Shown in pieces: positions 50,197-60,633 of a stretch of 64,000 nt of DNA. The position numbers and the translations under genes are program-made. The stretch spans positions 235,984 to 299,983 of the IMG/VR virus record IMGVR_UViG_3300046787_000408, one strand, 5' to 3'. Each line of letters starts with the position of its first letter. Positions within the stretch are counted from its first letter, which is position 1. The notes beneath the pieces are model-generated. The model was not told the DNA's origin, did no database searches, and saw only the letters and a list, made by a program, of their open reading frames with translations.

Positions 50197-50376
50197 ATGA
50201 TTATCAACATCCATTTACAAAATACATTGTGGCAAACTCAAACCATACCAGGCCCTGGCTACAACGTCACAGAAATTCTGGACAGCATTGAAAGTGCTCG
50301 TGAGGCTGGTGAGCTGAATTGGTTGTTGTGGGATCAACCCTTACGGCTTGACATACAAGTCGTAGAGCCGCTATAA
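50197..50376 (+). CDS. Small hypothetical protein (59 aa)
   Basis: TAAATA immediately upstream of ATG. Confidence 0.45.
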   Translation: MIINIHLQNTLWQTQTIPGPGYNVTEILDSIESAREAGELNWLLWDQPLRLDIQVVEPL

Positions 50377-55421: not shown

Positions 55422-55513
55422 GCCCCTATAGTTTAATGGTAAAACGGCGGATTTATATCCCGTAAGCAACAGATAATTGGTTCATCTGGGTTCAATTCCC
55501 GGTGGGGGTACCA
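55422..55513 (+). tRNA. tRNA-Ile(TAT) with long variable region
   Basis: Loop TTTATAT; ~22-nt variable region; ACCA. Confidence 0.7.
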
Positions 55514-55939: not shown

Positions 55940-56828
55940 TCCGGGGCAGTTTAATGTCCTACTAGGTAGCTTGCTATCTAGTGAAGAATAAGCTGAGTGA
56001 TCAGCCCAAAGGAGGTATGCCTACATAACTCCGCCAGCAATGGTTCGTTTAGACAAGCCTGCTCAGACTCGCGAGAGTCCCTTTACTGATAAGACCGGTG
56101 GAGGTAACAATGACGCTGGATGTTGTGGAAAGAACGTTTGCTTACCGGCCCGCAAGGGTAACCGGAGCAGATGGAAAGTAACAGGTGGTGCTGACTTCAC
56201 AACTAAACCAGTCCAGTTAATTGGTATGAGAAAGGGTAGTGTATTTGTCCGAGGTGTTGCAACCAAGGGCTCGTATGCAGTTTGAGTGGTTGGTGGATTG
56301 GCAGCAATGTCAAGACGCAGATCGCAAAAGACGACTGAGTAGTTCGCAAGACGAAAGGTACGTGGTGTGTTGTATTGTGTATTCCAAAAGAGTATGCAGC
56401 AACTGAGTCAGCACATCGCAGTAGGTTGTTATAAGCTAATGGTAAGCTAACTCCCTGTTAAGGAGTCGACTGCGGGTTCAACTCCCGCTAACGATTAAAA
56501 TGCAAAGACTGACTCGGTCGTATGTGAAAAGCATCTAATACTTGAGGCGCAAGCTAATCAAGTCAGACGTAACTCGCAAGGTGAAATCTGTTTATGCTGG
56601 AAGTTTCGTAAGGTGTTAGCGCACTTGAATGGCTCGCAAGGTCAACGGGATAGATGGCGTAGAATAGCATACGGCGACAAGACTACTGCCTGTCTTTAAA
56701 AACGGCGATGCTGATAGCAGACATGGATACCTGGCAACAGGGCTGTGTGGAAGTCGAGAGAAAGCTGGCTCGCAAGGCTGGTAATAATGCTCGAGGTGCT
56801 ATTGGGAGAGATGTATTCTCAGTCCTCC
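55940..56828 (+). ncRNA. GOLLD-like large ornate RNA
   Basis: ~890 nt without a credible ORF; promoter TTGACA-17-TACAAT (55906-55934); at least six CGCAAG-capped hairpins; lies in a phage tRNA array; contains an embedded tRNA. Confidence 0.75.
56425..56495 (+). tRNA. tRNA-Asn(GTT)-like domain embedded in the large RNA (no CCA)
   Basis: GTTGTTA/TAACGAT; AGCT-AATGGTA-AGCT; ACTCC-CTGTTAA-GGAGT; GCGGG-TTCAACT-CCCGC. Confidence 0.75.
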
Positions 56829-57920: not shown

Positions 57921-57999
57921 TCCGAGAAACTCGAGCAAGGTGCATGAGCTTGACTGTTAATCAATGGTTAGGTGGGTTCGATTCCCACACTCGGAGCCA
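57921..57999 (+). tRNA. tRNA-Asn(GTT)
   Basis: Loop CTGTTAA; atypical D arm. Confidence 0.8.
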
Positions 58000-58645: not shown

Positions 58646-58723
58646 CTCTGTGTAATGTCAATCTGGTAGACGGCCTGATCTGGAGTCAGGAGGCTGTACG
58701 TTCGAATCGTACCATGGAGACCA
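58646..58723 (+). tRNA. tRNA-Pro(TGG), atypical C33/A37
   Basis: CCTGA-TCTGGAG-TCAGG. Confidence 0.8.
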
Positions 58724-58977: not shown

Positions 58978-59041
58978 AAAAACAGTTGACAACATTCTGT
59001 AATTGTTGTATAATTAGAACTTAAACAAAAGAGGTAACACT

Positions 59042-59065
59042 ATGAAACGTTCAGGTAAACGATAG
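59042..59065 (+). CDS. Mini leader ORF MKRSGKR
   Basis: Promoter TTGACA-17-TATAAT (58986-59014); SD AAGAGG; stop abuts hairpin 59065-59101. Confidence 0.5.
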   Translation: MKRSGKR

Positions 59066-59127
59066 TGTCATCCTAGACCCCCGTATGGTCCTGGATGGCA
59101 CGTAAAAGACAATTCTTTACGATCCAT

Positions 59128-59204
59128 CCCTTCAAGATGTTACTGGTTAGCATACCGGACTCTTAATCCGAGAAGTCTGAGTTCGAATCTCAGTGGAGGG
59201 ACCA
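59128..59204 (+). tRNA. tRNA-Lys(CTT)
   Basis: Loop CTCTTAA. Confidence 0.82.
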
Positions 59205-59207
59205 TAT

Positions 59208-59285
59208 GGGGGTATAGTGTTAACGGTTTAGCACAGCGGACTTTTAATCCGCCAGGTCAGGGTTCGAATCCCTGTGCCCCTACCA
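59208..59285 (+). tRNA. tRNA-Lys(TTT)
   Basis: Loop CTTTTAA. Confidence 0.9.
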
Positions 59286-59411
59286 TATGCAAACACATTA
59301 ACCTGCGAAAAAGAATTCCGATGCATAATCGGCCAGTGTATAGTGTGTTTACATATGGTATTAATCTATCGACGGGTAGACACCATGCTGGGGAGTAATT
59401 AACCTCAGGAA

Positions 59412-60541: not shown

Positions 60542-60633
60542 GGAAAGTAATGCAGCGGGGATGGTCCTGCGACTGGCCTTGAAAACCAGGTTCTCTTAAC
60601 AGGGATGGGGTTCGACTCCTCTGCTTTCCGCCA
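60542..60633 (+). tRNA. tRNA-Ser(TGA) with 8/4 fold
   Basis: 8-bp acceptor GGAAAGTA/TGCTTTCC; 4-bp T stem; loop CTTGAAA; long variable arm; G73. Confidence 0.8.

Follow-up and report, generated by a model that had tools for sequence, protein, structure and literature searches.

A conserved lysine-codon leader ORF with alternative pairings onto phage tRNA-Lys genes: a probable, inferred ribosome-operated switch

Why would a phage place a seven-codon reading frame, with its own ribosome binding site, immediately upstream of a tRNA gene? The question arises in a stretch of 64,000 nucleotides (the window; positions 235,984 to 299,983 of IMG/VR record IMGVR_UViG_3300046787_000408), which is a jumbo-phage tRNA array. 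A first-pass annotation, made from the sequence alone, had described there a strong promoter, a Shine-Dalgarno (SD) sequence, a Lys/Arg-rich mini-ORF (MKRSGKR) whose TAG abuts a hairpin without a U-tract terminator, and an alternative pairing of one hairpin strand with the 5' end of tRNA-Lys(CTT). We found each of these features at the positions given, so the observation holds, but the element is larger than was described: the second tRNA-Lys, a long-range pairing of 59077-59090 with 59200-59213, and a 3' hairpin had been missed. The elements, all on the + strand, are as follows.

58986-59014 (+), perfect sigma-70 consensus promoter: TTGACA (58986-58991), 17-nt spacer, TATAAT (59009-59014).
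59030-59035 (+), SD sequence AGAGGT (AGAGG at 59030-59034), 7 nt before the ATG.
59037-59043 (+), 5' strand of P0 (ACACUAU, overlapping the AUG), which can pair with 59062-59068 (AUAGUGU), closing the start region of the ORF when P1 is open.
59042-59065 (+), leader mini-ORF MKRSGKR, with Lys AAA at 59045-59047 (codon 2), Lys AAA at 59057-59059 (codon -2, the second to last) and UAG at 59063-59065.
59065-59101 (+), hairpin P1: lower stem 59065-59073 with 59093-59101, upper stem 59076-59079 with 59087-59090, loop 59080-59086; the first G of the lower stem is the G of UAG.
59077-59090 (+), element L ("anti-acceptor"), the apical part of P1, complementary to 59200-59213.
59093-59098 (+), a' (GGAUGG), which can pair with the 5' strand of P1 or with b.
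59101-59121 (+), hairpin P2 (CGUAAA/UUUACG), stacking under the alternative helix a':b.
59124-59129 (+), b (CCAUCC), the leader of tRNA-Lys(CUU) plus its first two nucleotides.
59128-59204 (+), tRNA-Lys(CUU) with encoded CCA, found by ARAGORN and by the Rfam tRNA model (49.5 bits).
59200-59213 (+), L': GACCA (3' end of tRNA-Lys(CUU)), the UAU spacer and GGGGGU (5' acceptor strand of tRNA-Lys(UUU)).
59208-59285 (+), tRNA-Lys(UUU) with encoded CCA, missed by ARAGORN but matched by the Rfam tRNA model (61.8 bits at 59208-59282), with the anticodon loop CTTTTAA.
59281-59360 (+), 3' hairpin pairing the ACCA end and trailer of tRNA-Lys(UUU) (59281-59300) with 59341-59360.

We first asked whether the mini-ORF could be a chance ORF. 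The exact 24-nt sequence occurs in 46 IMG/VR contigs; however, an exact-match search is biased by construction toward nucleotide conservation, so the search was repeated in two ways. A degenerate back-translation recovered synonymous variants; of its nine hits in MAG contigs, only two (L191 and L198) entered the parsed module set. A search anchored only on sequence downstream of the ORF found the SD sequence plus ORF in 122 of 129 unique upstream regions, the other 7 being unrelated chance hits, and the ORF was in frame in all 122 homologous regions. Both chance and conservation at the nucleotide level only were therefore rejected. Among 131 unique viral modules the ORF is in frame in all and has 6-9 sense codons, codon 2 is AAA in 123 and AAG in 8, codon -2 is AAA in 130 and AAG in 1, the stop is always TAG, and an SD core is present in 127, mostly 6-8 nt from the ATG. 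Length changes come only in multiples of three, and the spacing AAA-NNN-UAG onto P1 is essentially invariant. About 88 further metagenome modules follow the same rules, giving 210 unique modules in total. Codon -2 is AAA in 185 of 185 modules with both tRNAs, and AAG in 4 of 12 modules with tRNA-Lys(UUU) only. A C follows both Lys codons in about 95% of modules, for which we have no explanation, and AAA at codon 2 is also a general feature of well-expressed genes.

The peptide, in contrast, varies widely (MKRSGKR, MKRAKR, MKRGKL, MKLDKI, MKASKS, MKHDKM, MKRKSRKL), with only the two Lys positions fixed. This bears on the possibility that the product itself matters, either as a basic micropeptide with its own target or as a lambda bar-like minigene, that is, a very short ORF (2-3 codons) whose expression traps a tRNA as peptidyl-tRNA. 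The ORF is very short, inferred to be strongly expressed and phage-encoded, and the commonest peptide, MKRSGKR, is kept through synonymous changes; however, this reading explains neither the covarying RNA pairings nor the exclusive linkage to tRNA-Lys, and we consider it the least likely of those examined.

The promoter is one of six perfect consensus copies in the window, against 0.05 expected by chance, yet it appears to be an optional part of the module, as promoter-like sequences were found in 38 of 129 unique upstream contexts (about 30%), the others following a tRNA or a protein gene. No terminator-like site was found on the + strand between 58986 and 59300, and no U tract follows P1, P2 or the alternative helix. 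The first-pass annotation had offered Rho-dependent termination as one outcome, and a related view is that translation of the leader, at the head of an otherwise untranslated transcript, would protect it from Rho or from 5'-end-dependent decay, the hairpins being stabilisers and the complementarity to the tRNAs incidental to processing. The strong SD sequence, the perfect promoter directly upstream in the window and the lack of an intrinsic terminator are in agreement with this view. However, nothing points to Rho, about 70% of modules lack their own promoter and lie inside arrays, a 24-nt ORF cannot shield 250 nt or more of downstream RNA, tRNAs are highly structured and make poor Rho loading sites, and neither the Lys specificity nor the covarying L:L' is explained, so that we regard it as quite improbable.

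We next examined whether the alternative pairings are conserved. The lower stem of P1 is paired in 95.4% of alignment cells, with covarying pairs and with GUGUCA/UGGCAC invariant. The a':b helix is paired in 88% of cells with 47 double-sided changes at one pair: columns 88-125 of a 230-column alignment are AU in 53 sequences, UA in 42 and GC in 5, and column 88 also covaries with its P1 partner. Its duplex energy within loci is -9.3 kcal/mol versus -7.1 when shuffled. Support for P2 is weak (65-68% of cells paired), although a repeat search reported 59093-59106 with 59116-59129. For L:L', the within-locus energy is -25.3 versus -20.8 kcal/mol shuffled, with 0 of 1000 shuffles as low, whereas control pairings differ by only 0.3-0.5 kcal/mol; these shuffles ignore phylogeny, and the control pairings also beat all shuffles, though by margins about ten times smaller. 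The same arms were reported independently by the repeat search (59073-59091 with 59199-59217; 19 nt, 89% complementary), enclosing P2 and tRNA-Lys(CUU). The length of the spacer between the tRNAs tracks that of the middle of L (Spearman 0.82, n = 88), and in 12 modules lacking tRNA-Lys(CUU), L instead matches the linker plus the 5' end of tRNA-Lys(UUU), at -15 to -27 kcal/mol. Column-wise counts on the MAFFT alignment are blurred by indels, with 79% of cells paired in the variable half of L:L'. P0 forms in the predicted minimum-energy structure of the window, and its pairing potential (UGACAU with GUGUCA) is conserved but does not covary (-7.56 within loci versus -7.38 kcal/mol shuffled). The 3' hairpin (20 nt, 90% complementary) is present in about 92% of 112 related modules, at -24.1 within loci versus -17.2 kcal/mol across loci. 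Two further complementarities of the window (I3 and I5 of the repeat search) were not seen in relatives and are treated as chance.

The fold in which L pairs with L', here called locked, is the predicted minimum-energy structure in 117 of 118 modules, by 9.2 kcal/mol on average; for the window the values are -95.3 versus -80.7 kcal/mol (z = -5.4). In simulated growing transcripts, P1 forms first and is displaced only once L' is made. Blocking a ribosome footprint at either Lys codon shrinks the gap to 3.6-3.9 kcal/mol, but the nearest-neighbour model still favours the locked fold in 97-102 of 118 modules, such that a switch would need unmodelled tRNA tertiary stability or kinetics.

Taken together, the best reading appears to be a ribosome-operated RNA switch that gates maturation of the two lysine tRNAs, working like an attenuator whose output is tRNA folding rather than a terminator. 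In one state P1 is closed, hiding L and a', and both tRNAs would fold and could be processed. In the locked state four pairings would form, in that a' pairs with the tRNA-Lys(CUU) leader and its first two bases, L pairs across the CCA end of tRNA-Lys(CUU), the spacer and the 5' acceptor strand of tRNA-Lys(UUU), the freed 5' strand of P1 pairs with the start region of the ORF (P0), and both RNase P sites then lie inside helices. The sensor would be the leader ORF, shorter than one ribosome footprint and with its UAG embedded in the base of P1. A ribosome waiting for Lys-tRNA at codon 2 or codon -2 would block P0 but leave P1 intact; with AAA(-2) in the A site, the first P1 base pair lies at about +12 from the P-site codon, the helicase position of the ribosome reportedly being near +11 (Takyar, Hickerson and Noller 2005; Yusupova et al. 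2001). A ribosome reaching UAG would unwind the invariant six base pairs at the base of P1 and release a' and L. Slow decoding of AAA (scarce Lys-tRNA UUU) would therefore favour tRNA-Lys maturation and fast decoding the locked precursor, as a feedback loop on lysine decoding capacity. What the sequences themselves establish is the conserved frame, the positions of the codons, the covarying alternative pairings and the predicted energetics, whereas translation, the effect on RNase P, the biological trigger and the sign of the response are inferred, the last from geometry, so that it could be the reverse. There is no experimental evidence for translation, for either fold or for any effect on processing, and the two sensor codons are not adjacent, unlike the codon runs of classical leaders; we hold the model with about even confidence. 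The proposal of the first-pass annotation that ribosome position controls tRNA-Lys folding or processing is thus partly supported: comparative evidence favours it, but the main regulated contact appears to be L:L', which it had not described.

Two other readings were considered for the same helices. In the first, L:L' (14-19 bp), a':b plus P2, and the 3' hairpin would be constitutive double-stranded sites for RNase III or another endonuclease, cutting the array transcript around the tRNA-Lys pair as the leader-trailer stems of rRNA operons are cut, with the mini-ORF as an accessory that times or protects the cut. Complementary flanks do enclose a stable RNA, both tRNA-Lys 3' ends sit in predicted helices of about two turns, the locked fold is the predicted ground state, and the module is often internal to polycistronic arrays without its own promoter. 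However, the length of L:L' is borderline for RNase III, and this reading does not explain the invariant Lys codons, the fixed spacing onto P1, the conserved SD sequence, or why P1 and b both mimic partners of the same strand. In modules with a single tRNA the helix encloses only a small hairpin, and no comparable conserved SD sequence plus mini-ORF was found upstream of any other tRNA among 3331 tRNAs in 174 loci. rRNA processing stems, moreover, have no ORF, whereas here one arm is held in a competing hairpin next to an ORF inferred to be translated. We consider this reading unlikely, although it is the strongest of the alternatives.

In the second, the AAA triplets would act as specifier codons and UGGUC in L would bind the free ACCA end of a mature, uncharged tRNA-Lys in trans, as in a T-box, without ribosomes. 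The conserved triplets are lysine codons, and UGGUC with GACCA is paired in 99.7% of cells, but the helix continues past CCA into the spacer and the next tRNA, which fits the precursor in cis. The in-frame ORFs, their length changes and the well-spaced SD sequence argue for translation, and no T-box or other Rfam family matches 59015-59127 at E up to 1. T-boxes monitor tRNA supply, as the proposed switch would, and choose between alternative folds with a UGG-type sequence that pairs with a tRNA 3' ACCA end, but they bind mature tRNA in trans without ribosomes, have conserved Stem I and T-box sequences and control synthetase or transporter genes. This reading seems very unlikely.

The module shares with the ribosome-mediated transcription attenuators (trpL, hisL, pheL, thrL, and pheM of pheST) a short leader ORF with an SD sequence, codons for the amino acid whose decoding is at stake, a first helix abutting the end of the ORF, and mutually exclusive helices between which the position of the ribosome is inferred to choose. 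It differs from them in lacking a terminator hairpin with a U tract, in an output helix that competes with a tRNA acceptor stem and covers RNase P sites, in having the tRNAs themselves downstream instead of biosynthetic or synthetase genes, in having only two sensor codons, at fixed first and last "safe" positions, and in being encoded by a phage, often inside a tRNA array. With translational attenuation (ermC, cat) it would share remodelling of an adjacent hairpin by a ribosome on a short leader, without a terminator; there, stalling depends on a specific nascent peptide plus an antibiotic and the output is exposure of a downstream ribosome-binding site, whereas here the peptide is not conserved and tRNAs follow.

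Leader-peptide switches are described for protein genes, acting through terminators or ribosome-binding sites; a translated leader deciding whether a tRNA folds and is processed is not known to us, and searches of the literature for the MKRSGKR peptide and for leader peptides combined with tRNA operons, RNase P and phages returned nothing relevant. If confirmed, the "anti-acceptor" pairing would be a new output for ribosome-sensing RNA switches, and would show that giant phages regulate tRNA supply rather than only encoding it. It would also single out lysine as the one codon family these phages monitor. Lysine decoding is already a battleground, as host nucleases target tRNA-Lys(UUU) and phages respond with T5 tRNA-Lys against PARIS or T4 repair of PrrC-cut tRNA-Lys (PMC11464382; PMC10264068); these cases share with the module a phage investment specifically in lysine decoding, but they concern the tRNA or its repair enzymes, and neither paper describes a regulatory leader for the phage tRNA gene. 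A more speculative possibility, which we consider doubtful, is a defence-triggered supply of lysine tRNA: destruction of host tRNA-Lys(UUU) by a PrrC- or PARIS-type nuclease would stall ribosomes on the AAA codons and keep P1 closed, so that the phage tRNA-Lys pair matures, whereas in unchallenged cells the precursor would stay locked. This would be the first sensor coupling translation failure at one codon directly to maturation of the matching tRNA. Being compact (about 340 nt) and having about 210 natural variants with built-in compensatory changes, the module is directly testable in a cell-free translation plus RNase P system, and could be reused as a synthetic sensor of codon-specific translation speed.

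The module is conserved in uncultured giant phages and no cultured phage carries it: blastn against GenBank phages returned only tRNA hits, or chance hits of 19-26 nt for the leader, and in the KVP40-like Vibrio phage V09 tRNA-Lys lies 6 nt after tRNA-Phe with no leader. Nor is a neighbouring protein conserved with it: the upstream ORFs differ between loci, encoding a DSP-type phosphatase, a DUF7448 protein or an unannotated product.

The window derives from a 300-kb uncultured jumbo phage (contig IMGVR_UViG_3300046787_000408) whose DNA polymerase is about 50% identical to those of Sinorhizobium phage Phosso and Agrobacterium phage Atu_ph07. Positions 46-61 kb hold an array of 38 tRNAs detected by ARAGORN, plus several that were detected only with Rfam models. 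A GOLLD RNA (Rfam RF02032, 192.6 bits, full-length model match) lies inside the array at 56362-56825, with tRNA-Asn (56424-56497) embedded in it, and the tRNA-Ile(TAT) called at 55422-55513 is 92 nt long, unusually long for an Ile tRNA, such that it may carry an insertion or an intron. Six perfect TTGACA-17/18-TATAAT promoters occur in the + strand of the window, at 50348, 53001, 57063, 58986, 59748, and 63087, against 0.05 expected; several of them share a similar initial transcribed sequence (roughly aNACTTa..ACA..AACAAA), which suggests one phage promoter class. The promoter at 58986 heads the element examined here, whose components are as follows.

58986-58991 and 59009-59014, + strand: the -35 and -10 hexamers of the promoter
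7 nt before the ATG: the putative SD sequence, AGAGG
59042-59065: the mini-ORF, encoding MKRSGKR followed by a stop
59037-59043 with 59062-59068: P0, a potential pairing of the bases at and just before the AUG with the P1 5' strand
59065-59101: hairpin P1, in which 59065-59073 pairs with 59093-59101 and a short upper stem pairs 59076-59079 with 59087-59090
59077-59090: L, the apical part of P1
59093-59098: a' (GGATGG), in the 3' strand of P1
59101-59121: hairpin P2
59124-59129: b (CCATCC), complementary to a', whose last two bases begin tRNA-Lys(CTT)
59128-59204: tRNA-Lys(CTT)
59200-59213: L', complementary to L
59208-59285: tRNA-Lys(UUU), which follows after 3 nt
59281-59300 with 59341-59360: the 3' hairpin

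The first-pass annotation, made from the sequence alone, had described the promoter, the SD sequence, the seven-codon ORF, the hairpin abutting its stop codon, and the alternative pairing onto the 5' end of tRNA-Lys(CTT), and all of these were found in place. Its statement that there is no U-tract terminator also held, as no terminator-like site was found nearby on the + strand. However, it did not see the contact between L and L'. The second tRNA, Lys(UUU), was missed by ARAGORN but scored 61.8 bits with Rfam. Three further weak tRNA-like hits lie in the array (58647-58719, 57921-57996, and 60542-60629), including one to the tRNA-Sec model (36 bits, below threshold); a recurring pseudo-ORF, MQRGWSCD.P, overlaps that last element here and recurs next to tRNAs in relatives.

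We then asked whether the mini-ORF is conserved as a reading frame. The exact 24-mer was found in 46 IMG/VR contigs whose flanks differ widely; however, as this search could only find identical copies, it was repeated in two other ways. A degenerate back-translation revealed at least 84 contigs and six synonymous spellings, with changes at CGA/CGT/CGC, TCA/TCT/TCC, GGT/GGC, and AAA/AAG. An anchor lying wholly downstream of the ORF (the end of P1 plus the CUU anticodon loop) retrieved at least 120 stretches; of 129 unique upstream regions, 122 carry an SD sequence and an in-frame ORF ending in TAG-TGTC, whereas the other 7 are unrelated coding sequence. Among 131 unique viral modules, the ORF has 6-9 sense codons, codon 2 is AAA in 123 and AAG in 8, the second-to-last sense codon (codon -2) is AAA in 130 and AAG in 1, the stop is always TAG, and an SD core is present in 127. 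In the alignment, differences in ORF length are gaps of 3, 6, or 9 nt. A metagenome scan added at least about 88 unique modules that follow the same rules, the single exception at codon 2 (MNRSGKR) being located in a visibly decayed copy; in total, at least 210 unique modules were found. The peptide itself varies (MKRSGKR, MKRAKR, MKRGKL, MKRTGKL, MKRKSRKL, MKLDKI, MKASKS, MKHDKM, and others), which conflicts with a role as a functional peptide or minigene. What is conserved is therefore a translatable frame, two lysine codons, and the spacing AAA-NNN-UAG-UGUCA onto the hairpin. Both Lys codons (the following bases are 59048 and 59060 in the window) are followed by C in 125-126 of the 131 modules (about 95%), giving AAAC twice, and neither the peptide nor any pairing tested explains this. 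A ribosome-free sensor of the T-box type conflicts with the strict conservation of the frame, and no Rfam match was obtained.

The lower stem of P1, GUGUCA/UGGCAC, is invariant, and its first G is the G of the UAG stop; above it lie a covarying middle and the short upper stem. The P1 3' strand a' can pair instead with b. In the 230-column alignment, the a':b pair at columns 88-125 is AU in 53 sequences, UA in 42, and GC in 5, and the same column also covaries with its P1 partner (UA 53, AU 26, CG 5), which is the signature of one strand with two partners. Within-locus a':b duplexes are 2.2 kcal/mol better than those with shuffled partners. When P1 is open, its 5' strand can pair with the bases at and just before the AUG to form P0, a potential that is conserved (UGACAU with GUGUCA) but does not covary.

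L' consists of GACCA at the 3' end of tRNA-Lys(CUU), the UAU spacer, and GGGGGU at the 5' end of tRNA-Lys(UUU), and its complementarity to L was independently reported by a repeat finder (19 nt, 89% complementary). Across 85 unique L/L' combinations, the within-locus duplex averages -25.3 kcal/mol against -20.8 for shuffled partners, with 0 of 1000 shuffles as low, whereas two control pairings differ by only 0.3-0.5 kcal/mol; these shuffle controls ignore shared ancestry, and indels in the MAFFT alignment blur the column counts for L:L'. Matching sequence classes are evident, for example CCCCCGUAUGGUC with GACCAUAUGGGGG, and AUCCCAUGUAUGGUC with GACCAUACAUGGGAU. In addition, the length of the spacer between the tRNAs tracks the length of the middle of L (Spearman 0.82, n=88). 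In 12 unique modules that lack tRNA-Lys(CUU), L is complementary to whatever precedes tRNA-Lys(UUU) plus its 5' acceptor strand, at -15 to -27 kcal/mol; the constant target of L is thus the 5' end of tRNA-Lys(UUU). The 3' hairpin pairs the ACCA end and trailer of tRNA-Lys(UUU) with AUAUGGUA downstream; it encloses a variable insert of 40-110 nt, is present in about 92% of 112 related modules, and is sometimes tandemly repeated (related loci L012 and L014). A constitutive processing-stem role of the RNase III type would explain the helices, but not the Lys codons, the spacing, or the SD sequence.

The predicted minimum-energy fold of the whole precursor is a "locked" state made of P0, a':b stacked on P2, and L:L'. 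For the window it is -95.3 kcal/mol (z = -5.4), against -80.7 when P1 is enforced, and the locked state is the minimum in 117 of 118 modules, by 9.2 kcal/mol on average. Blocking a ribosome-sized stretch with the A site on either Lys codon reduces this advantage to 3.6-3.9 kcal/mol. As these energies do not include tRNA tertiary stability, the two states may be closer in reality. In growing transcripts, P1 and the tRNA-Lys(CUU) acceptor stem are the predicted stable structures until about position 59204, and the predicted fold flips as soon as L' is included.

From these observations, we propose a model in which the position of the ribosome selects the fold. The conserved frame, the codon positions, and the alternative pairings are supported by the comparative and thermodynamic analyses, which constitute all of our evidence, whereas translation of the ORF, the response to ribosome position, and the effect on RNase P sites are inferred. 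The ORF is shorter than a ribosome footprint, such that any ribosome on it would cover the P0 5' strand. The mRNA tunnel and helicase of the ribosome lie at about +11 from the first P-site nucleotide; a ribosome with AAA(-2) in the A site would then place the first P1 base pair at about +12, leaving P1 intact. Two translocations later, with UAG in the A site, the invariant six base pairs would have to be unwound, freeing a' and then L. In this view, codons 2 and -2 are the first and last A-site positions at which a waiting ribosome blocks P0 yet spares P1. Slow decoding of AAA would hold the RNA in the tRNA-competent state while tRNA-Lys(UUU) is transcribed and folded, and fast decoding would push it into the locked state, in which both RNase P sites and the CCA end lie in helices. 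The sign of this response is the least certain part of the model. The interpretation in the first-pass annotation, that ribosome position may control folding or processing of tRNA-Lys, or Rho-dependent termination, was supported only in part. Protection from Rho or from decay does not fit modules buried inside arrays, and about 70% of modules lack their own promoter.

The logic is that of ribosome-mediated attenuation; however, the defining terminator and the protein-gene targets are absent, so the element is not a member of that family. It differs in being a putative leader-ORF switch whose output would be tRNA acceptor-stem formation, and no description of it was found in Rfam 15, in GenBank phages, or in the literature searched.

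Among 3331 tRNAs in 174 loci, conserved SD sequences plus mini-ORFs occur only upstream of tRNA-Lys. When both tRNAs are present, Lys(-2) is AAA in 185 of 185 modules, AAA being read only by the UUU anticodon, whereas AAG appears in 4 of 12 modules when only tRNA-Lys(UUU) follows (Fisher p about 8e-6, not corrected for phylogeny). Host tRNA-Lys(UUU) is the target of PrrC (PMC10264068) and of PARIS, which phage T5 escapes with its own tRNA-Lys (PMC11464382); a defense-responsive role is therefore plausible, although for this module it remains a hypothesis. In related loci such as L029, L030, L042, and L023, some tRNA-Lys(CUU) and tRNA-Lys(UUU) copies of the module are non-canonical, with a T loop reading GGATCGTTACC instead of GGTTCGAATCC and an unusual D arm, and they may be nuclease-evading or otherwise specialized tRNAs. 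In another locus (L051:8872-10426), an ORF for a 241-aa HNH endonuclease is inserted in the P1 loop directly after ...GACCCCCGTATGGT, splitting the leader from its tRNAs in what looks like a homing-endonuclease insertion. Complete modules were also found on short contigs binned into bacterial MAGs, one of Bacteroidetes (L191) and one of Polynucleobacter (L198); these are most likely phage contigs mis-binned with bacteria, and they hint at freshwater hosts.
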